A stretch of 63,504 bases of DNA, filler included, from Octopus bimaculoides (Eukaryota): assembly GCF_001194135.2 (NCBI RefSeq). It is 4 parts of 3 records of this genome, joined end to end, with 100 filler letters (N's around TTAATTAATTAA, not from the genome) between each part and the next. Parts side by side here need not be neighbours in the genome. Positions count along the whole stretch, not along the records: positions 1 to 31,054 come from NC_069004.1; 3 more parts are not named here. One strand, 5' to 3'. The notes under the pieces were generated by a model, which worked only from the letters and a program-made list of their open reading frames with translations, was not told the origin of the DNA and did not search any database. This document shows, piece by piece, positions 1 to 23,600 of the stretch. Position 1 is the first letter of the stretch. Every line of letters begins with the position of its first letter. Made by a program: the position numbers and the translations under genes.

Positions 1-53
<53 letters not shown>

Positions 54-316
54 TAGGGCAGGGAATTGTCAATTAATTAATAAATTAATAATTAACAATT
101 TTGCCAAGTAGTTCAGTATGCAAAAAATCCTTTATCGGTAAAACATTTATAATTATAAGCATAATATAGGGATCAGCGAAAGTTGCTTCACCAACATATT
201 GAAAATTTAGAAATCTGTGCTGAGTAGTGTCGGTCCCAGACAAGACAAGTTCCACAGTAGTGCAGCCTTAAGAGAACATTGAAGCGATGGCATTGCTAGA
301 AATCGAGTTGCAACCA

Positions 317-358
<42 letters not shown>

Positions 359-604
359 GCACATACACACGCATGCGCGCACGCATGCTTGTGCTCGCGT
401 GTATTTGCCTATTTTAAAGTAAATTGGTGTGTTGAGTGACATGTCGAAATGGTAAAATGTAGCCACTTGATAAATAAAGCTCAATAAATTAAGCATCAAA
501 GCAAAAATATTAGCTGGAGGAAAACCCATTGACGGCGGTGCCTGACCATGACCACAGCATGACCAAACGGATATATAAAAAAGAAATAACAAATGAAAAC
601 TTAC

Positions 605-775
605 AAGATTTTGAGGAGGTGTTGAGAACTCCCAGTCATCAACCTTCTTGATAAATTTATCTCCACGTTTCACTGCAAGGTTGCTCTCACGAATTGCGAA
701 GTATGCTGTACTGAGACTCTCTACCATGTTTCCGTAGGTGTAATAGGTTTTCTTGTCAAATTCATACATCATTAT
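605..775 (-). CDS. Coding exon 3 of the secreted protein (IMMYEFDKKTYYTYGNMVESLSTAYFAIRESNLAVKRGDKFIKKVDDWEFSTPPQNL)
   Basis: Acceptor TTTTTTTAAG|ATA, 171 nt open, donor CTT|GTAAGT, phase 0 at both ends and in frame with exon 2. The gene probably continues beyond window position 1. Confidence 0.88.
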
Positions 776-1030
776 CTTAAAAAAATATACAGTAGAACAA
801 GGATCAGGTGTAGGAAGTTAGTAAGCTTCGAGCAGGCCGTAGAAGGTATAAAAAACAACTTTGAGGAGCAATAGTGGTTTCTTGGCGTAGAAGATTGTAA
901 ATTTTCCTTTATCGACGACAATTTAACCTTAATTTAACTAAGTAATCCTCGTTCAGTAACCGTAACTTCCGAGGTTCAGCTAAGAAACATATGTAATCTG
1001 GATTTTACCTGCTCCACTCCCTAAATCTAG

Positions 1031-1062
<32 letters not shown>

Positions 1063-1074
1063 CTGTCAGATACC

Positions 1075-1118
1075 GGCCATGATGAAATACCACAAGGTAT
1101 TGAAAATACGTATTCGCC
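1075..1118 (+). ncRNA. Minimal type I hammerhead ribozyme-like motif with one extra A in the core
   Basis: GGC-C(A)TGATGA-AATACC-acaa-GGTATT-GAA-AATACGTATT-C-GCC: 3-bp stem I, perfect 6-bp stem II, palindromic stem III, TTC cleavage triplet at 1113-1115. Confidence 0.65.
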
Positions 1119-1389
1119 TTTATATATTTAATCCTTTATATTGAACACTCAATATTTCATATATTCAATAAGACATATTCCATATATTTAATAAGACATT
1201 CAGTACTTCATTTCATTGTCCCATCCGTTTTATATCATATATTATATATTCCATATTATATATCCCACATTAATTTTACAAGAATATAAATAAAACATAA
1301 AAAACAGACAGAGTTGGAACTCTTTTAAATAAAATAATATATTCCTCTATACACGATCATACAAAACCCTTTTTTTGTATTTATTTTTA

Positions 1390-1473
<84 letters not shown>

Positions 1474-1667
1474 AAGAAGATACTATAATGATATATTAAT
1501 ATATTAAAATATATTAAACACATTATAGTATAAATGGCTTGCTAGTAACTAAAAGCCAAAATGGACTTAATAAATAAAGGGTGCGAAATAGCAACAGTGA
1601 TTGCTAAAAATAAGAGTCAAAAATTAATTCTGACACCCACAAAATTGGTTATATAACTTTAACTTAC

Positions 1668-1828
1668 TTTTGGTGCCAAGTCCATCTTCAGGATGTCCTT
1701 TGATATGTTGCCTAAGACAGCAACAGGTTCTTGAGCAAATAAAATTGGTTGATCAGTATCTACGCCGCCTATTGCTTCATTCAGAGCTTTGATGGCATTT
1801 TGTTTAATTGTTTCAACAGAGACAAAAC
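1668..1828 (-). CDS. Coding exon 2 of the secreted protein (G-FVSVETIKQNAIKALNEAIGGVDTDQPILFAQEPVAVLGNISKDILKMDLAPK)
   Basis: Acceptor TTTCTTTTATCTAG|GT, 161 nt open reading, donor AAA|GTAAGT, phase 1 in and phase 0 out. Confidence 0.88.
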
Positions 1829-1901
1829 CTAGATAAAAGAAACATTATATATGTATATGTATCTATATATATATATATGCATAAGTGTATGTATGTATGT
1901 A

Positions 1902-1962
<61 letters not shown>

Positions 1963-2204
1963 GCAATATGTATCTATTGCATACCAATATGCAATATCTA
2001 TACCTCTCTGTAAAACTGCAATAGGAAAAAAAAGAAAAGAAAAGTCGAAATATATGGTAGGAAAAAATATAATTAATCCATATTATGATAGCCATAGACA
2101 TAACTGTGTGGTTAAAAAGTTCGTTTAGCAAACACGTAGATTATGTATATAACATATACATACATATATACATACATACATACATACATACATACATACA
2201 TGTG

Positions 2205-2415
2205 TATATGTTTGTGTTTGTCGACCCTCACAGCTTGACAACCGGTGTTGGCTTATTCATGTCCCCGTAACTTACAGTTTCGGTAAAAGAGGTCGATAGA
2301 GTAGGTACTAGACTTAAGAAAAAAAAGACCCACAAGTACTGTGGTTGGTTTGTTAGCTTATCTCCTTCAAAGTGGTGCCCCATCATGGCCGCAATCCAAA
2401 GATTGAAACCAGTGA
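2205..2415 (+). mobile_element. SINE family A, diverged 3' half
   Basis: GCTTGACAACCGGTGTTGG...CCCCGTAACTTA...CATGGCCGCAATCC matches the family A tail. A similar piece lies at about 4265-4460 (+) and another at about 5470-5700 (-). Confidence 0.75.
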
Positions 2416-2420
2416 ATAAT

Positions 2421-2585
2421 GAGTGGCTGTGTGGTATGTAGCTTGCTTACCAACAACATGGTTCTGGGTTCAGTCCCACTGCGTGGCACCTTGGGCAAGT
2501 GTCTTCTACTATAGCCTCGGGCCGACCAAAGCCTTGTGAGTAGATTTGTAGACGGAAACTAAAAGAAGGCCGTCGTATATATGTG

Positions 2586-2617
<32 letters not shown>

Positions 2618-2643
2618 NNNNNNNNNNNNNNNNNNNNNNNNNN

Positions 2644-2675
<32 letters not shown>

Positions 2676-2907
2676 TGTATGTATGCGTGTGTGCATGTTT
2701 GTGTGTCTGTGTTTGTCGCCCCAACATCGCTTGACAACCGATGCTGGTGTGTTTACGTCTCCGTAACTTAGCGGTTCGGCAAAAGAGACCGATAGAATAA
2801 GTACTAGGCTTACAAAGAATAAGTACTGGGGTCGATTTTCTCGACTAAAGGCAGTGCTCCAGCATAGCCGCAGTCAAATGACTGAAGCAAGTAAAAGAGT
2901 AAAAGAG
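2421..2907 (+). mobile_element. tRNA-derived SINE family A, full length with internal microsatellite (intron 1 of the gene)
   Basis: Head GAGTGGCTGTGTGGT...GGGTTCAGTCCC (A/B-box-like), body CACCTTGGGCAAGTGTCTTCTACTATAGCC, tail CAGCATAGCCGCAGTCAAATGACTGAAGCAAGTAAAAGAG. Many homologous copies occur in the window. Confidence 0.9.
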
Positions 2908-2944
2908 TAGTGACAAAAAAAAAAGAAAGAAAGAAAGAGAATAC

Positions 2945-3008
2945 CTTGGCAGATCTGTACAGTAACCACTGCAAGACTTAAAGACAAAATGAGCCAATTG
3001 TAAGACAT
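2945..3008 (-). CDS. Coding exon 1 of an uncharacterised secreted protein (signal peptide MSYNWLILSLSLAVVTVQICQ-G)
   Basis: ATG at 3008 in context CAGAA-ATG. The 21 codons form a hydrophobic signal-peptide-like stretch. Phase-1 donor AAG|GTATTC at 2945/2944 matches the phase-1 acceptor of exon 2. Confidence 0.85.
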
Positions 3009-3066
3009 TTCTGCTGGTATCCGGTTCTTCCTGATTTCTGGATCGTTTCTGTCTCTGGTTTGGTGG

Positions 3067-3230
3067 TTTATATACCTCTTATATGTTGGGCCTTGAATGG
3101 AAGAGATGTCATATGTTTCTTTGTTTACAATTCTTTTGCTTCGCTGCCGTCACCGAAAACCCATTCCCACCCCTCTCTCGTTCCCTACGATATTGTCCAG
3201 ACATCGTTTTTAATAAAAGAAGCCGGAAGT
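3067..3230 (-). promoter_or_regulatory. Putative core promoter of the secreted-protein gene: TATA box, Forkhead-like and ETS-like sites
   Basis: TATATAAA on the minus strand at 3074-3067, about 60 nt upstream of the ATG. GTAAACAA (minus) at 3128-3121. CCGGAAGT (plus) at 3223-3230. Confidence 0.55.
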
Positions 3231-3339
3231 ACTTTCAATGAATGCTTTATTGTAAAAATTGATTGTAAGAGTGTTGAACGATGAAAAATATAAAAATAAA
3301 ACGGGGCGTGATAATAATACTAATAAGAAAAAAAAGAAT

Positions 3340-3340
3340 G

Positions 3341-3433
<93 letters not shown>

Positions 3434-4140
3434 GTTTCTTTTGTTGGCCACAAGGGCCTAAGACATGGAGAACAATATCAAAGGACGAGCGACAACACAC
3501 AGAAGAAAAAAAAGAAGAGAAAGAAGGAAGAGGAGAAGAACATGTGGAGGAGGAGGAGGAGGAGGTGGAGGAGAACAAGGGGAGGAGAAGAAGAAGGATG
3601 AGGAGGAGGAGAATAAGAATAAGAAGGAGGAGGAAGGGGAGGATGAGAATAAGAATAAGAGGAGGGGAGAAGAGAAAAATAAGATGAAAACGAAGAAGAG
3701 GAAGAAGAAGCAGAAGAAGAAGGAGGAAGAAGAAGAAGGAAGAAGAAGAAAGAAGAAGAAGGAAGAAGAAGAAGGAAGTAGAAGAAGAAGAAGAAGAAGA
3801 AGAAGAAGAAGGAAGAAGAAGAAGGAAGTAGAAGAAGAAGAAGAAGAAGAAGAAGGAAGAAGAAGAAGGAAGTAGAAGAAGAAGAAGAAGAAGAAGAAGA
3901 AGAAGAAGAAGAAGGAAGAAGAAGGAAGTAGAAGAAGAAGAAGAAGAAGAAGAAGAAGAAGGATGATGAGGAGGAGGAAGGGGAGAAGGAGGAAAATAAG
4001 AATAAGAAGGACGAGGGGAGAATAATAAGAAGTAGAAGGAGAAGAAGAAGAAGAAGAAGAAGAAGAAGAAGAAGAAGAAGAAGAAGAAGAAGAAGAAGAA
4101 GAAGAAGAAGAAGAAGAAGAAGAAGAAGAAGAAGAAGAAT
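3340..4140. repeat. Compound (AAT)n and (GAA/GAG)n microsatellite block
   Basis: Direct reading. It is the source of the poly-F/L/S/K/E pseudo-ORFs in the track. Confidence 0.95.
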
Positions 4141-4584
4141 TTAGATTTCATAGAATTGTTGATTCCATTCAATAATGCGTTAATATGCGAGTGAACATCG
4201 ATATAAACACCTTCATGTATGCATGAAAGAATGTATGTATATTTGTGTGTATGTATGTGTATGTGTGTTTCTGTGTATGTGAGTATATGTTTGTCCCTAC
4301 AACTTGGGTTGTTTCGTTTACGTCCCCATAACCAATTTGGGGTTCAACAAAAGATAGCGATTACCAGACTTTACAATTGGGGTGAATTTTTTTCGACTCA
4401 CCCGTAAAAACGGATGCTACAGCATGGCCGTACTCTGATGATTGAAACAAGAAAAGGAAAAGAACAAAGGGATACGCCTTCTACAACATGCTGCGATGCT
4501 ACACTTTGTGCTATCAGCAGTATTTTAACCATTTGACAACGTAACTAAAATTCATGGCCAATGCCATGATTTCAAATTATGACA

Positions 4585-4773
4585 CAAGGCCAGCAATTTT
4601 GAGGGAGAGGCTAAGTCGATTACTTCGACCCCAGTGTTCGACTGGTACTTATTTTATCGAGCCCGGAAGGATGAAAGGCAAAGGTCGACCTTCGACGGGA
4701 TTTGAACTCTGAACTTAAAGACGGATGAAATGCCGCTAAGCATTTTGCCTGACGATTCTGCCGACTCACCACT

Positions 4774-4834
<61 letters not shown>

Positions 4835-5305
4835 TAATAATAATTCTTTCTATTATAGGCAAAAAGCCTGAAATACTGGGGGAGGGGAGCAGTCGATTAC
4901 ATCGACCCCAGAGTTTCACTAGCACTTAATTTATCGACCTCGAGAAGATCAAAGGCCAAGGCCTACCTTTGGCAGAATTTGAACTTGGAACGTAAAAACG
5001 AATGAAATGCCGCAAAGCATTTTATCCGGCTTGCTAACGATTCTGCCAGCTTACCAACTTGTTATGAAGAAATATTGGCTTCAAATTTTGGTACAAGGAC
5101 AATAATTTCGTGGTAGTGGTGGTGGTGGTGGGTGGGTGTCAATCGATTACAGCAACCTCAGTGCTCAACTAGTAATTATTTACCGATACCGAAAGGATGA
5201 AGGGTAATGTCGACCTCGATGGAATTTGAACTCAACGTAAACACGGAAGAAATACCGCGAAACATTTTGCTCGGTGCGCAAATGATTCTGTCAGCCAGAT
5301 CACCA
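4585..5305 (-). mobile_element. Three tandem copies of tRNA-derived SINE family B
   Basis: Repeated reverse complement of GAGTTCAAAT.CC..CGA.GGTCGACTTTGCCTTTCATCCTT.CGGG.TCGATAAAATAAGTACCAG at about 4585-4770, 4850-5050 and 5080-5305. Confidence 0.85.
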
Positions 5306-6432
5306 CCTTAATGGTCATTCCCAAAATGATGATAATTCTCTGCCCTAGTAAAAACTAGAATTGATATTTTCTGCTTCTGCAATAAATTTTTTTCTTGCAT
5401 CTCTTGTAAGTATGGTTTTCATATTCACCGCTAAAATTATTCGCTTCTTGCTCTCTAAATTTTTTTACCTTTTAACTTTTATTTCTTTCAGACATTAGGT
5501 TGGGACCATGCTGGAGCACCGCCTTGAAGAAATTTTATTTGAACGAATCTACATCAATACTTATCATGTTTTATTTTGTTTCAAAGCCTGATACTTATTC
5601 TATCGTTGTCTCTTGCCGAACTGTTAAGTGATGGAAACGTAAGTACACCAACACTTGTTGTCAAATGGCAGTGAGGGAGAAACACAGACACAAAGACACA
5701 AAGGCACACACAAACATACATACACACACACAAACACACACGAACACACACTCTCATTCAGTGGGTCTTAGTCAGAAACCACGTAGTTGGGAAGCAAATT
5801 TCTTAGTCGAAATATTCAGAATATGCTCTGGTAAAATATGGCAAAAGTAGAAAAGTAATAACAACATGAATATTTTGTAATAACAATGAAGAATAACATA
5901 AATTAGTTGTCGTGGTGAAAGTGATAGAGAAGGATTAATCTAGGTCCTTACAACACTTACTTATAATTAAATCCGTTCCAATCATGACCGATTCGCCTTT
6001 TGTTTTCCAAACTTAACCATTTTAATTATTTACAAGTGTGATTTGTTCGCGGTCACGCTGATAGAGGATGACTGAAACGATAATCGATGAGGGAGTGAGT
6101 GGCAGGCAGAGACGTTAAACGTAGTTGTAGGGAAAGAGAACAATGATAGTTGCATTGAGTTTTAGTGTGAGGTTTGGTATTGGCTGGAGTAGCAGGTATT
6201 TTTGACCAAAATGAAAGTGTAATTCATTATCGAAAATTTTGAAAGAAATATATTTTCACTAAATTTCATAGATTCACTAAATTTCATAGATTATACTCAA
6301 AGGTAGAAAAAAAGAAAGGAAGAAAATGTTTTGGATTTTAAATGTTCGAATTTCATGTACATATTCAAGAGCACATACATATTCGCACACACTCAAGCAC
6401 ACATATTTGCATACACATTTGCACACACGTTT

Positions 6433-6481
<49 letters not shown>

Positions 6482-7536
6482 CACACACACACACACACAC
6501 CCGTGTGCCCAAGCATGACAAGCATTAACAAAGGATTTCCCGTTGCTTAAAAAATACTTTTAGATAAAAGAGAATAGTTTGATATTTAATTTCATAAATG
6601 CATCCATACACACTCATGTGTATGTATGTATGTATGTATGTATGTATGTATGTATGTATGTATGTGTGTGTATGTATGTACCTATGCATGTGTGTTTGTA
6701 TGAATGTTTGTATGTATGTATGNNNNNNNNNNNNNNNNNNNNNNNNNNNNNNNNNNNNNNNNNNNNNNNNNNNNNNNNNNNNNNNNNNNNNNNNNNNNNN
6801 NNNNNNNNNNNNNNNNNNNNNNNNNNNNNNNNNNNNNNNNNNNNNNNNNNNNNNNNNNNNNNNNNNNNNNNNNNNNNNNNNNNNNNNNNNNNNNNNNNNN
6901 NNNNNNNNNNNNNNNNNNNNNNNNNNNNNNNNNNNNNNNNNNNNNNNNNNNNNNNNNNNNNNNNNNNNNNNNNNNNNNNNNNNNNNNNNNNNNNNNNNNN
7001 NNNNNNNNNNNNNNNNNNNNNNNNNNNNNNNNNNNNNNNNNNNNNNNNNNNNNNNNNNNNNNNNNNNNNNNNNNNNNNNNNNNNNNNNNNNNNNNNNNNN
7101 NNNNNNNNNNNNNNNNNNNNNNNNNNNNNNNNNNNNNNNNNNNNNNNNNNNNNNNNNNNNNNNNNNNNNNNNNNNNNNNNNNNNNNNNNNNNNNNNNNNN
7201 NNNNNNNNNNNNNNNNNNNNNNNNNNNNNNNNNNNNNNNNNNNNNNNNNNNNNNNNNNNNNNNNNNNNNNNNNNNNNNNNNNNNNNNNNNNNNNNNNNNN
7301 NNNNNNNNNNNNNNNNNNNNNNNNNNNNNNNNNNNNNNNNNNNNNNNNNNNNNNNNNNNNNNNNNNNNNNNNNNNNNNNNNNNNNNNNNNNNNNNNNNNN
7401 NNNNNNNNNNNNNNNNNNNNNNNNNNNNNNNNNNNNNNNNNNNNNNNNNNNNNNNNNNNNNNNNNCATACATACATACATACATACAACATACATACAGG
7501 CATACATACATACATACATACATACATACATACTTA

Positions 7537-10330: not shown

Positions 10331-10438
10331 ATTTCACACAGGTCTATGTATGTATGTATGTATGTATGTATGTATGTATGTATGTATGTATGTATGTATG
10401 TATGTGTGAATGTATGTATGTATGTGTGTATGTGTGTG

Positions 10439-10792
10439 TGTCAAGTCCTCATTAAAGGCCTGTGATATGCAGGACACTGACTGGGAGAACAATGCCTGTC
10501 ATCGCCACAGATGGAGGAAGCAGGTTAAGGAGGGGACCGACACTTTTGAGAGAGCACGTATCCAGCATGAAGAACTTAAGCGAGCTGCGCGAAAGCGCAC
10601 GGCTCGTATAGTGAATGGGGAAAGCTTAATCTGCAATGTTTGCAGTCGTGTCTGCTTGTCAAGAGCAGGGCTCATTAGCCACCAACGGAGCCGCAAATGC
10701 AAAATATAAGTTAGTCCTAGAGCGCACAATGTTCCCGAAGGTCGGCAATGGTCTTCCTCGGTCACGAGTGGACGGCCATTATCATCATCATT
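10439..10792 (+). mobile_element. 5'-truncated RTE (BovB-like) LINE 3' end
   Basis: Open frame KSSLKACDMQDTDWENNACHRHRWRKQVKEG...LICNVCSRVCLSRAGLISHQRS* matches the RTE-BovB C-terminus with its zinc finger. It has a short 3' UTR, an (ATC)n tail, and sits in a (TATG)n array. Confidence 0.85.
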
Positions 10793-12739: not shown

Positions 12740-13036
12740 TATATATATATATATACGTGTGTGTCTGTGTGTATGTGCGTGTGTGTATATATATATGTAT
12801 ATATGTATGTGTGTATGTATGTATGTTTATGTTTCATGTTAGTTTTCATTCATTTTGTTGTTGTTTAGTGTAGTTTTTATAACATTGAATGCTATCATCA
12901 TCATCATCATAATCATCCTCAGTATCACCGTCATCGTCATCATCATCATCATCATTATTGTTACTGGTGTTATTATCATTATTAGTGGTGATATTAGTAT
13001 CAATATTCGTCTTCTTAATATTATTACTGCCAGTGT

Positions 13037-13103
<67 letters not shown>

Positions 13104-13294
13104 GCTACTGCTGCTGCTGCTGCTGCTACTACTGTTACAGTACTACTACTACTGCCAATACCACTACTTCTAGTTCTACTACTACCACTACCACCATCAC
13201 CACTACTACTACCACCACCACCACCACCACCACCACTACCACTACTACTACTCTTCGTTTTCTTCTTCTTCTTCTTCTTCTTCTTCTTCTTCTT

Positions 13295-13325
<31 letters not shown>

Positions 13326-13708
13326 TTATTATTATTATTATTATTATTATCATTATTATCAATATTATTATTATTATTACACTGTTCAACAAAACAATGT
13401 GCAACAGGAAATAACTTTTAGTTCGAAAAACAAGTAACCATTTTTGGTGCTGATTTCAAAGCGTGTCTTCCGGTTTTCCACCAGCGCATACATTTAAAGG
13501 ACGAAAGCGGTTAGTTAGTGTTTTTAATCATTATGTATATTCATCTTATCTTGAAATATTTAACTTTTTTTCATTTGAGCCAAGGTAGGAAACCACATTG
13601 AACAGATTTTAGATGAAAAAACAACAATAAAAAACAATTCTAATACTTACTCTTCTTAAAGTCTGGAATATTGGTCTGTAATATTTGACAATTTTGTAAT
13701 TTCTTTTA

Positions 13709-13871
13709 GCTGAAGAATTGACAAAAATACCTTTGGAAACAATTCAAACTTTGTTCGAGTCCATACCTCATAGAATTCAAGCAGTAATTACTGCCAAAGG
13801 AGGTCCTATCTCATACCAAAATAAATTTGTTTGAAATTTTAAGGTGTTTCCATTATTTAGCCCAAACCCTG
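13709..13871 (+). mobile_element. Tc1-like transposon right end
   Basis: Encodes EELTKIPLETIQTLFESIPHRIQAVITAKGGPISY, the Tc1 C-terminal motif. It ends ...CCAAACCCTG followed by TA. Confidence 0.8.
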
Positions 13872-14580
13872 TATATATAAGCAATAAATTAGATAGAGAG
13901 ATCCAATATGTCAATCCAATAATTCATTTATATCGTAATATAACATAATATACTATGAATATAATATAAAATAACATAAATATTCATTAAAAATCAAGAG
14001 TCAGCAATTTGTTTCGACTTAAATGCATTATTTGATTTATAATACATATCCACTTATATAAGTCACTTCAGATCTTTGGTTTATAGACAGACGAAATTCC
14101 GTGTGAAAGGACTACTGGATTGTAAAAAAATTAATTAAAATACCTATATATTATGAGCGTGAGCGTTATCTTTTCAACTACATAACAGTTACAATTAAAA
14201 AAACAACAAAATAATTAAGTAAATAGAATGTACAACTATCGAAATATATTTCTATATATCTCAAATAAATGATATTAATCTAAATTCGTTTAGGTCGAAA
14301 ACAATTTTTGTTTATTATAATAATATACAGCAACAGTACATAGGTATATAAATTATCAGGGTTTTAATGTAGAGACTGTAATAAGACGTGTAAATAAATC
14401 TAAATGATAATATACTATTATATTGTTAATATATAACAACTCTTCTCTTTTATTTAAAGTTATTGATATAAAAAGAAATTGTTTAAAGTAACTAACAAAA
14501 AAAAAATGTCCTTCATTTATTTAGTTTATCGAAGGGAGAATTCCGTAATAAACATGAAGAGAAACCTTACAGAAAGGTTA

Positions 14581-14964
14581 CTCTTTTACTATTTTAATTG
14601 TTTCAGTCATTTGACTGCGGCCATGCTGGAGCACCACCTTTAGTCGAGCAAATCGACCCCATGACTTTGTAAGCCTATTACTTATTCTAGCGATCCCTTT
14701 TGCCGAACCGCTAAGTTACGGGGACGTAAACACACCAGCATCGGTTGTCAAGCGATGGTGGGGAGACAAACAAAGACACAAACATATACACACACATACA
14801 TACACATATAAGACGGGCTTTCAGTTTCTGTCTACCAAATCCACTCACAAAGCTTTGGTCGGCCCGAGGCTATAGAAGAAGACACTTGCTCAAGGTGCCA
14901 CGCAGTGGGACTGAACCCGGAACCATGTGGTTGGTAAGGAAGCTACTTACCACACAGCCACTCC
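14581..14964 (-). mobile_element. SINE family A, full length
   Basis: Reverse complement of the copy at 2421-2907. Confidence 0.9.
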
Positions 14965-15150
14965 TACGCCTTTATTTACTTAATATATTGGAGGGAGAAT
15001 TCCGTAATAAATATGAAGATAAACTTAGAGCTATAATAACTACAACTTATATTACCCCATAGATATAGAGTTAAGCTACAATAGCGGATGTCAAAATATT
15101 AATAGTTTTTCAGAAGTAACCAGTTTGAAGTTACTTAAATAAAGATTATT

Positions 15151-15506
15151 CACATGGTTCCAGATTCATTCCCACTGCGTGACACCTTGGGCAAGTGTCT
15201 TCTACTATAGCCTCGGGTCGACCAGAGCCTTGTGAGTGGATTTGGTAGACGGAAACTGAAAGAAGCCTGTCGTATATATGTATGTGTGTGTATATGTTTG
15301 TGTGTCTGTGTTTGTCCTCCCAACGTCGCTTGACAACCGATGGTGGTGTGTTTACGTCCGCGTAACTTAGCGGTTCGGCAAAAGAGACTGGTAGAATAAG
15401 TACTAGGCTTACAAAGTATAAGTCCTGGGGTCGATTTGCTCGACTAAAGGCGGTGCTCCAGCATGGCCGCAGTCAAATGACTGAAACAAGTAAAAGAGTA
15501 AAAGAG
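15151..15506 (+). mobile_element. SINE family A, near full length (lacks the first ~35 nt)
   Basis: CACATGGTTCC...GCAGTCAAATGACTGAAACAAGTAAAAGAGTAAAAGAG. Confidence 0.9.
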
Positions 15507-15779
15507 TAACTAACAAGTAAATGTCCCTATATTCGTATATTATGGAAGGGAGAGCTCAATGAATAAAATAAAGTAAGATAAACAAAAGCAAGGATTGAAG
15601 ACTGATCCTGATAAATTTAATATTATTTTTTAGATAAAGGACTATAAATACTGTATATCCAAATTTCGTTAACTCTTTCACAAGTAACAAAATTATATTG
15701 TAGTAATAAGAATACAAATTATAAACTATACACTACTATAATAATTAAAATTTAGTTAGTAAGTCAAATAAAACTATTC

Positions 15780-20579: not shown

Positions 20580-21063
20580 CCTTCGTAACACAGAGTAGGT
20601 AAAAATGTACCGGAATCTTTAGTCATCTGTCAAGTCACAACAAGGACCTTAAGCAGATGAGACTTTCCTTAAGATGTGCGCTGTGCCCAATAAGGCTGCT
20701 TTTTGCAAGACATCAATCTTGCATGGGATTTCCAGTTGCCTTAAGAAGTCTTGAAGTTTCAATGGGATTGAGCCCAACGCTCTGATCATCACTAGTATCA
20801 CTTTTACATTACCGACTCGTATTCCATACAATCTTGCCATTTCCACTTTCAATTCGGAATACTTAGTGATTTTTTTCAACCTCCACTCACAACATTCATG
20901 TCGTTTGGTATGGCTACATCAATAATCTGACAGTATTTGTCTCTCTTACTTAATATGATAATATCCGACCGACGGTGTTCGAGCATACGATCCGTCTGAA
21001 AATCAAAGTCACGGAGCATCGTTACTTTTCCCTCTTCCTGCATAACTTTACTTGCTACATACC
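20580..21063 (-). mobile_element. R4/Dong-like non-LTR retrotransposon 3' fragment (REL endonuclease)
   Basis: KY.EL..E.ARL......VI.V.I.ALGSIP...LQKAALLGTAHILRKV C-terminus, preceded by ML.DFDFQTD..LEHRR.DI. Flanked by (TTA)n on the plus strand. Confidence 0.85.
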
Positions 21064-21084: not shown

Positions 21085-22299
21085 TCAGTAGTTTTATTTT
21101 TATAACGTGCTTTCACTTCACTACCGAGCGCAGCTCTGTGCGCCTTGGATATGTGCTGTGGTTTGCTGTGGTGCTCTTATGTTTACTGTATTGAAAGTGT
21201 TTTGCGTAGAATGTGTACAGTACCCAGTAGTGCAATTTTCTGTATGTTATATATATTTGTAAGTCCTGGTATTTTTGTTATGTATTTGTCTGAATATTTT
21301 TTTATTATACCTAAGGCACCTACTATGATAGGAATTGTTTCTGTTTTTAGATTCCACATTCGAGTTATCTCTATTTCCAGGTCTTTGTATTNNNNNNNNN
21401 NNNNNNNNNNNNNNNNNNNNNNNNNNNNNNNNNNNNNNNNNNNNNNNNNNNNNNNNNNNNNNNNNNNNNNNNNNNNNNNNNNNNNNNNNNNNNNNNNNNN
21501 NNNNNNNNNNNNNNNNNNNNNNNNNNNNNNNNNNNNNNNNNNNNNNNNNNNNNNNNNNNNNNNNTATTCCATAGTGTTGGCATAGCTTCCAGTGTATATA
21601 GGTCCCAGCTCTGTCGTGTCTGTGAATATATTCCTTCTTAGCCAGGACTGGGCAGCCAGAGATAATATGATTTATTGTTTCTTGTCGATCTCCACATATT
21701 CTACAGTTACTTGTTATATTTCTTTTCATTATGTGTTTTTGGTAATTTCTGGTGAGGAGGCTCTGGTCTTGTGCAGCAATTCAAAATCCTTCAGTCTCTG
21801 CTTTGAGTCCTGAGCTTCTCAGCCATTGCTGGGATTTTTCTCTGTCTATTTCTTTCGCATTTAGTTTAGCCCAATATTTACCATGTAGGGGCTTTTCTTG
21901 CCATCGTTTTATCATGGTCCCCTCATTATTATTATTATTATTTCTTTTTATCTCAAGCATTGTTGGAACTCCTGGACTCTTACATGTGTAGCGGGCTTGC
22001 TGCCGGCAGCCTACGGTACCATGCTATCTATTCTTTTCAACTATCTGATACTTTCCTGATTATTCTGGCCGTAACAGTTCTTTCTTCTGCAACAGATCTT
22101 TCTACTGGGCACTCTATTCCAATCTCCTTTATATTCTTCTTGATGCCTTCTGGTACTGTCCCCAGGGACCCAACAATAATTGGTACTATCTTCCCATTCT
22201 TCATTTTCCATAGCCGGGTTATTTCGTACCTAAGAGGGTTGTATTTATCTATTTTTTTGCTTTCCTTCTTGACTATTCATGGGTCAAAGAGACAGGCAG

Positions 22300-22300
<1 letters not shown>
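21085..22300 (-). mobile_element. R4/Dong-like LINE, 5'-truncated (thumb, CCHC knuckle, REL)
   Basis: LKAETEG...AAQDQ, CRICGDRQETINHIISGCPVLAKKEYIHRHD and YKDLEIEITRMWNLKTETIPIIVGALG. Both ends abut (AAT)n. Confidence 0.9.
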
Positions 22301-22341
<41 letters not shown>

Positions 22342-22734
22342 GATCATCATCATCATTAACGTTGACGTCATAAGAGCTTATAAACTTCGAAAGAATGTGA
22401 AATAATTAATTCCTTTTGGGATCGGTGTATCTCGAGCAGATAAGCTATAAATATTAGGGCGTAAATATTATGACGTCAACAACAAATAATTCTCATTAGT
22501 AAGAATAAAGCTTTTAAAACGGATAGAGAAATTTGAAGGATTGCTTTTGTTCAATGGCAGAATTTATATTTACAGGAGACGTGAGTTCGAGCCCCACATT
22601 CAGCATTCGACCCTTTCTATCACAAGGGTTTTCCAATTCAATATTTACATGCTGTTATTTACAGTCGTATGTGCTTCGGTAAATGAGGTCAATTTTTTTT
22701 TCTGGATCAGTGGATCTCGAAGCAGAGAGGCTAT

Positions 22735-23112: not shown

Positions 23113-23600
23113 GCTGAAGTAAAACCAAATATATAGTGCGTGTGTGTAATTGGAAAAATATGACTATCCCCAAATATCACGTTATCTACATTTCAACAAT
23201 TGAACTTTGAAACTTCTATTTTTCATTACATTTCAGAGAAATTTAGCGTTGAGTTGCTGAAGCAGAAATATCGTTATAGAACATTTTCTGCTCAATACCA
23301 CGGATTTGCTTGACCATAACCACATAAGCATCTCCGTTAGGAGCTGACAATATGTGCATCTCTGAAAAGGCGACGAGCTGGCAGAAGCGTTAGCACTCTG
23401 GGCGAAATGCTTAGCGATATTTCGTTTGCCGTTATGCTCTGAGTTCAAATTCCGCCGAGGTCGACTTTGCCTTTCATCCTTTCGGGGTCGATGAAATAAG
23501 TACCAGTTACGCACTGGAGTCGATGTAATCGACTTAATCCCTTTGTCTGTCCTTGTTTGTCCCCTTCTATGTTTAGCCCCCTGCAATAAAGAAATAAATA
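22735..23600. mobile_element. SINE family B copies at about 22735-22862 (-) and 23366-23600 (+)
   Basis: AAGGCGACGAGCTGGCAGAAGCGTTAGCAC...GAGTTCAAATTCCGCCGAGGTCGACTTTGCCTTTCATCC motif and its reverse complement. Confidence 0.85.

Follow-up and report, generated by a model that had tools for sequence, protein, structure and literature searches.

Does the minus strand between positions 605 and 3230 of a 63,504-nucleotide (nt) stretch of the Octopus bimaculoides genome (RefSeq assembly GCF_001194135.2), hereafter the window, encode a secreted protein, and is that protein related to anything known? The window joins four parts end to end with filler between them, and the interval lies in the first of these (positions 1 to 31,054, from NC_069004.1), hereafter the piece. 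An earlier note on this DNA had proposed an unrecognised three-exon gene here, with a signal-peptide-like start and its own TATA promoter. We find that the interval is a spliced, intact protein-coding gene with the exons so proposed. It very probably represents the promoter and exons 1 to 3 of the four coding exons of LOC106882666, an orphan secreted-protein gene of coleoid cephalopods.

Gene structure and identity

Splicing the three proposed exons from the minus strand of window 1-3600 gave 396 nt, joined in phases 1 and then 0, that translate into 132 amino acids (aa), and all of the canonical splice sites fell where the earlier note had placed them. Coding exon 1 (3008..2945, minus strand, as are all features of the gene given below; 64 nt) runs from the ATG to a GT donor, CAAG/gtattc, where the slash marks the exon boundary. 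It covers Met1 to the first base of codon 22, essentially the whole predicted signal peptide, MSYNWLILSLSLAVVTVQICQ(G). Intron 1 (1829..2944, phase 1) holds a gap of 26 N's and two pieces of a repeat resembling a short interspersed nuclear element (SINE). Coding exon 2 (1828..1668, 161 nt, aa 22-75) extends from tatctag/GTTTTG to CCAAAA/gtaagt and is followed by intron 2 (776..1667, phase 0), the position of which matches that in a decapodiform genomic contig (L009). Coding exon 3 (775..605, 171 nt, aa 76-132) extends from ttttaag/ATAATG to AATCTT/gtaagt. As the earlier note had remarked, the list of open reading frames (ORFs) has exon 3 alone, within an ORF of 158 aa.

The model was correct for exons 1 to 3 and incomplete at its 3' end, where a fourth coding exon lies outside the window. 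The beginning of intron 3 (1..604, phase 0) runs past the window edge into an assembly gap of 1593 N's. A downstream exon sought in window 1-604 was not found; the last exon is missing because the piece ends at this gap (13009-14601 of the matching assembly locus, L002), inside intron 3. Extending the model past position 1, as the earlier note had advised, placed exon 4 at L002 15342-15746 (405 nt, aa 133-266, TGA stop), with an AATAAA signal 52 nt beyond the stop. The full four-exon coding sequence (CDS) translates to the 266-aa protein XP_014788915.1 (P0008).

The locus is already known, as an annotated gene model without a name or a domain. CM046624.1 of assembly GCA_001194135.2 (L002; window position x corresponds to L002 13009-x) matches window 1-6722 and further blocks at 100% identity. 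The 132-aa model is identical to residues 1-132 of XP_014788915.1 (132/132, gapless), a match far above chance. This protein is the "uncharacterized protein LOC106882666" of O. bimaculoides, and it belongs to the same gene, of which the window carries exons 1 to 3 only; RefSeq assigns it no function or domain. The gene cannot then be called unrecognised, as it was in the earlier note: NCBI already models it here and, as LOC115223893, in Octopus sinensis. We found no paper mentioning the gene in a full-text literature search with all accession numbers, and the NCBI annotation has no other gene within 10 kb on either side.

Predicted features of the protein

The N terminus has the properties expected of a cleavable signal peptide. 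KD19 hydropathy reaches its maximum of 2.02 at residues 6-24, and the maximum in the mature chain is 1.0. The cleavage after Gly22 suggested in the earlier note is compatible with the -3/-1 rule, and the QG/QA site aligns between octopus and Sepia-type relatives (C-Q-G/F in O. bimaculoides, S-Q-G/Y in O. sinensis, and G-Q-A/F in Sepia-type proteins). The predicted mature chain has 244 aa, a mass of 27.9 kDa, an isoelectric point of 7.8, and a grand average of hydropathy of -0.32. It has no further transmembrane segment, no hydrophobic C-terminal tail of the glycosylphosphatidylinositol-anchor type, and no KDEL-type retention signal, and the C termini in the family are hydrophilic (...YAPKE, ...FTAMH, and ...ELSA). 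One NIS sequon is present in the mature chain, and two conserved cysteines lie 41 residues apart. Because of the signal peptide, the lack of a transmembrane segment, and the two conserved cysteines, the product is most likely a globular protein that is soluble and secreted, contains one disulfide, and has neither repeats nor recognisable catalytic motifs.

Orthologues in Octopus and relatives in decapodiforms

We compared the 132-aa N-terminal sequence with 1.84 billion representative proteins in an exhaustive HMMER search. The three matches comprised octopus and Sepia-type proteins plus one artefactual match. The best was CAI9740369.1 of Octopus vulgaris (266 aa), with 80% identity over residues 1-131; XP_029650473.1 (LOC115223893) of O. 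sinensis, also 266 aa, is in the same cluster. The O. sinensis locus (L001) agrees with that of O. bimaculoides in its four exons, down to their lengths, phases, and splice-site dinucleotides. Nucleotide identity to O. sinensis is 91, 83, 93, and 86% in exons 1 to 4, so that the best conserved is exon 3, which bears the motif KR.D.FI..VD.W.F..P. The start of the signal peptide, MSYNWLILSLSL, is common to all three Octopus proteins, and O. sinensis retains the TATA promoter, but the orthologues have diverged fast, with 77-78% amino acid identity. A second O. vulgaris model of the gene, CAI9740368.1 (P0005, 205 aa), diverges after residue 164, in mid exon 4, and probably represents either an alternative model or an error. 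All three Octopus proteins have an RGD tripeptide (residues 112-114; window 663-671, minus strand) in a KRGDKF motif; Sepia-type relatives have RED in its place, and RGD is not a family feature.

A profile search extended the family to relatives of 273-300 aa at 29-36% identity (about 31%). These include two proteins from Sepia esculenta hatchling RNA-seq (P0003 and P0007), P0009, P0014, two proteins from Tara marine plankton (P0011 and P0012, run ERR1711942), and one JGI contig. Several are encoded by uninterrupted cDNA contigs of about 1 kb from runs SRR20545817 and SRR31864755/6, which according to the literature are whole-hatchling RNA-seq of S. esculenta. The expression evidence found comes from these Sepia relatives only, in whole hatchlings. 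Separately, one S. esculenta Logan contig (L003) carries the 3' coding end of a UBA/UBX-type (UBXN1-like) gene at 3-1184, 27 nt upstream of a 5'-truncated homologue at 1212-2033; this contig is most likely a chimeric assembly.

The Sepia-type homologues share with the octopus protein a signal peptide, two cysteines (Cys177 and Cys218 in octopus numbering, invariant in all full-length members), both family motifs (that of exon 3 and GGLTG.F..A.F.PR), introns 2 and 3, and overall length. They differ in a 14-residue insertion before the GGLTG motif, besides their low identity. Intron conservation is seen in two Sepia-type genomic Logan contigs (L009 and L007), which have the boundaries of exons 3 and 4 at the octopus positions and phases (cag/ATCATG..., ...ACC/gtaagt, and cag/GTCAAA). 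Since motifs, cysteines, and intron positions are conserved in the Sepia-type relatives, the sequence comparison places the origin of the family before the octopodiform-decapodiform split.

A conserved proximal promoter

Upstream of the ATG lies a proximal promoter with a short 5' untranslated region (3009..3300, minus strand) that is about 94% identical to that of O. sinensis. Over 300 bp upstream of the ATG, identity between O. bimaculoides and O. sinensis is 94%, against 77-88% in other alignable noncoding DNA at the locus and 83-93% in the exons. This conservation supports the presence of a functional, compact promoter. The TATA box announced in the earlier note is present as TATATAAA (3074..3067), with its TATAAA core starting 64 nt upstream of the ATG, and it is identical in O. 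sinensis. Matches to TATA[AT]A[AT] are frequent in the AT- and microsatellite-rich piece (about 26 per kb, both strands counted), and we favor the TATATAAA copy among them because of its position and conservation. From this placement we infer a transcription start near 3040, at the CA at 3040-3039. TATA-box core promoters are usual for regulated, tissue- or stage-restricted genes.

Farther upstream, the Forkhead-like motif TGTAAACA (3129..3122) differs in O. sinensis by a T-to-C substitution; the resulting TGCAAACA remains within the loose core RYMAAYA. The motif is short, and matches of the T[GA]TTTAC type occur about 0.8 times per kb in the AT-rich piece; as evidence for Forkhead control it is weak. 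Directly upstream of the conserved promoter are an (ATA)41 run at 3311-3433 and a purine-rich (AGA/GGA)n low-complexity tract of about 600 bp at 3521-4139, and both tracts yield long spurious ORFs on either strand.

Restriction to cephalopods and searches for a known fold

The earlier note had raised the possibility of a cephalopod-restricted secreted family, and we found relatives in octopus and Sepia-type species only. No credible relative outside the cephalopods appeared in the exhaustive search with aa 1-132 or in a word-indexed profile search of 5.8 billion proteins. Pattern-based scanning of JGI metagenome contigs gave none either, and 185,579 prokaryote genomes, searched by pattern plus tblastn, had no relatives. 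A word-indexed protein search with the 132-aa model gave no match at all, which we attribute to a failure of index sensitivity, because exhaustive HMMER did find the family. As far as the databases reach, the family appears restricted to coleoid cephalopods.

Likewise, Pfam, NCBIfam, and PDB-sequence searches with the single protein, the full-length orthologues, and the family profile gave no credible match, in agreement with the absence of a recognised domain in the earlier note, and none to a well-known conserved family. The best subthreshold matches were 6PGD_like (E value of 0.16), DUF713 (E value of 0.0032; 17.7 bits against a cutoff of 24.5, and for one family member only), and calsenilin in the PDB (E value of 0.033). 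The earlier note had also recommended structure prediction with a Foldseek search. We ran AlphaFold2 with a seven-sequence alignment on the octopus protein P0008 (predicted local distance difference test [pLDDT] of 39.8; predicted template modeling [pTM] score of 0.36) and on its relative P0009 (pLDDT of 34.2; pTM of 0.23). These low-confidence models agree only on helices, three long strands at about 185-243, and a C-terminal helix. With the better model, Foldseek against the PDB returned nothing below an E value of 0.15, with template modeling (TM) scores of at most 0.26, and so no credible fold match.

Points against and competing explanations

Several points weigh against reading the interval as a functional gene for an orphan secreted protein. 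Constraint within Octopus appears weak. Between O. bimaculoides and O. sinensis, Nei-Gojobori estimates of nonsynonymous (dN) and synonymous (dS) divergence are 0.126 and 0.198 (73 nonsynonymous and 29 synonymous differences), and the resulting dN/dS of 0.63 is not clearly below 1 (rough chi-square P of about 0.06, from a single pairwise comparison). No Logan transcript contig encoding the octopus form turned up in the protein searches, which is compatible with stage- or tissue-restricted expression or may simply stem from what the database contains. Hydropathy and the -3/-1 rule were the sole basis for calling the signal peptide, the C-terminal half of the protein was covered by the word-indexed profile search only, and fold prediction gave two unusable models. 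The weak constraint and the missing octopus transcripts would also fit a lineage-specific ORF that drifts nearly neutrally, a dying or nonfunctional gene that annotation still models. We consider this very improbable. Neither O. bimaculoides nor O. sinensis shows a disrupted frame or a lost splice site, and the annotated O. vulgaris protein, CAI9740369.1, has its full length. The Sepia-type homologues keep the invariant motifs and cysteines, intron positions are conserved in decapodiform contigs, the Sepia homologue is expressed, and conservation is higher in the proximal promoter than in the DNA flanking it. What chiefly argues for function is that the frame is intact in three species and that conservation reaches as deep as Sepia. 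It is also improbable that the N terminus is an uncleaved signal anchor, making the product a type II membrane protein. Its n-region lacks a positive charge (MSYN...), which leaves room for an anchor, but the hydrophobic core spans only about 13 residues (WLILSLSLAVVTV) and is followed by a polar c-region, and the small residues at -3/-1 in the bimaculoides, sinensis, and Sepia-type proteins are as in cleaved signal peptides.

The two remaining alternatives accept a functional secreted protein and deny its isolation. It is unlikely, we think, that the protein is a very divergent member of a known secreted fold family, such as the membrane-active alpha/beta proteins of the Cyt/Evf/volvatoxin type or a lipid-binding fold. 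The order of elements predicted from the models (helical hairpins, three long beta strands, and a C-terminal helix) would suit such a family, and Foldseek aligned Evf (2w3y) and Cyt1A (6t14, 6t1c, and 3ron) over the full length at low rank. These alignments are, however, at random level (E values of at least 0.23, probabilities of at most 0.13, and TM scores of 0.18-0.26, from a model with a pLDDT of 39.8), and the family has no Pfam or PDB profile match. The Cyt/Evf lead itself was ruled out by an hhalign probability of 0.06% between the family profile and a Cyt1Aa sequence; the structural comparison is weak because of the poor model. The sole match outside the cephalopods was MBI4550219.1, a 1946-aa protein from an Omnitrophota metagenome-assembled genome, with a phmmer full-sequence E value of 5.6e-12. 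The exon-3 module (aa ~75-130) and the roughly 100-aa Omnitrophota repeat have in common the pattern [KR]R.D[KE][FY][IL]..[IV]..W.[FW]..P, and hhalign, run profile against profile, gave an E value of 2.2e-4 over 56 columns. Shared ancestry, whether as an ancient shared domain or by inter-domain transfer, is nonetheless extremely improbable. The full-sequence E value is a sum over 14 near-identical repeats, each worth only 0-10 bits, a single repeat unit scores 13.9 bits (E value of 5.6e3 at library size), the hhalign probability is only 45%, and the prokaryote genome searches described above found no relative of the module. We rejected the match as evidence of homology and kept it as a weak lead.

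Repeats and surroundings of the gene

The N gap in intron 1 (2618-2643) lies between (CA)n and (TA)n runs, and because it is inside the intron, the reading frame does not depend on it. Its flanks are the two halves of one SINE-like interspersed repeat of about 400 nt (about 2421-2909). Two copies elsewhere in the window, at 14570-14975 and, inverted, at 15140-15515, pass through the gap point uninterrupted and without an expanded microsatellite. In O. sinensis intron 1, moreover, a single stretch without a gap aligns colinearly with both flanks: O. sinensis positions 1640-1865 and 1868-2039 correspond to O. bimaculoides intron positions 36-261 and 354-524. From the uninterrupted repeat copies and the colinear O. 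sinensis intron, we take the two flanks to be continuous. A second, related repeat fragment lies in intron 1 at about 2199-2327. In all, this SINE-like element with its internal CA/TA microsatellite was seen at 2421-2909 (minus), 2199-2327, 14570-14975 (plus), 15140-15515 (minus), and 23374-23597; the copies at 14.6 and 15.3 kb lie close together and inverted to each other. It has a tRNA-like B-box region, yet ARAGORN called no tRNA.

The rest of the piece (3.3-31 kb) consists of microsatellites, N gaps (13 runs in the piece, about 4.9 kb in total), SINE-like copies, and retrotransposon remnants. Scanned in full, the piece matched no Rfam family and gave no tRNA. ORF fragments at 20649-20879 (minus), 21183-21729 (minus), and 21960-22343 (plus) resemble the C-terminal end of ORF2 of a non-long-terminal-repeat retrotransposon, with a weak zf-RVT match (E value of 6e-5; 24 bits, below the Pfam cutoff), and are interrupted by an N gap at 21392-21564. 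A 99-aa ORF at 10410-10709 (plus) ends in a C2H2-like zinc finger (zf-met, E value of 8.5e-4, below the cutoff); it adjoins microsatellites and is probably another transposon remnant.

A candidate lineage-specific secreted protein

Returning to LOC106882666 as an orphan secreted-protein gene, we propose the following course from gene to product. Transcription would start from a compact TATA-box core promoter within the conserved 300-bp proximal region, as general knowledge of TATA promoters suggests. The product would enter the secretory pathway by its 22-residue cleavable signal peptide and be released as a soluble, mixed alpha/beta globular protein of about 28 kDa, probably stabilized by one disulfide between Cys177 and Cys218. 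A structural or repeat protein is unlikely. Because the protein is fast evolving, clade restricted, and secreted and its gene has a TATA promoter, we suggest, with low confidence, that it acts outside the cell, without enzymatic activity, as an effector or binding protein within a lineage-specific secretion, and that hatchlings or paralarvae may express it. A further-reaching proposal, possible but doubtful, is that this is an undescribed coleoid-specific family of secreted proteins of about 28 kDa with a new fold, serving lineage-specific secretion; the protein might, for example, be secreted by a gland of hatchlings or paralarvae, or act as an effector in immunity or against prey. In a bolder variant, the exon-3 module would have a common origin with a repeat found in giant surface proteins of Omnitrophota.

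The locus itself adds nothing new, as gene models already exist in RefSeq for three Octopus species. What the present analysis adds is that the family reaches back to the octopus-cuttlefish split, with conserved introns, cysteines, and motifs, that relatives outside the cephalopods are not detectable, and that the proximal promoter is under more constraint than the coding sequence. Orphan secreted proteins may underlie cephalopod innovations, whether in venom, mucus, immunity, or the biology of eggs and hatching. This family makes a small, tractable case (266 aa, one likely disulfide), and nothing marks it as more remarkable than many other uncharacterized cephalopod-specific genes.

Orphan secreted genes are reportedly numerous in octopus genomes, for example in the O. 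bimaculoides genome paper of 2015. LOC106882666 is like orphan secreted cephalopod proteins in general in its compact gene, signal peptide, fast evolution, and lack of homologues outside the clade. It differs from the suckerins and reflectins, which are repetitive or of low complexity, whereas the LOC106882666 protein is neither.

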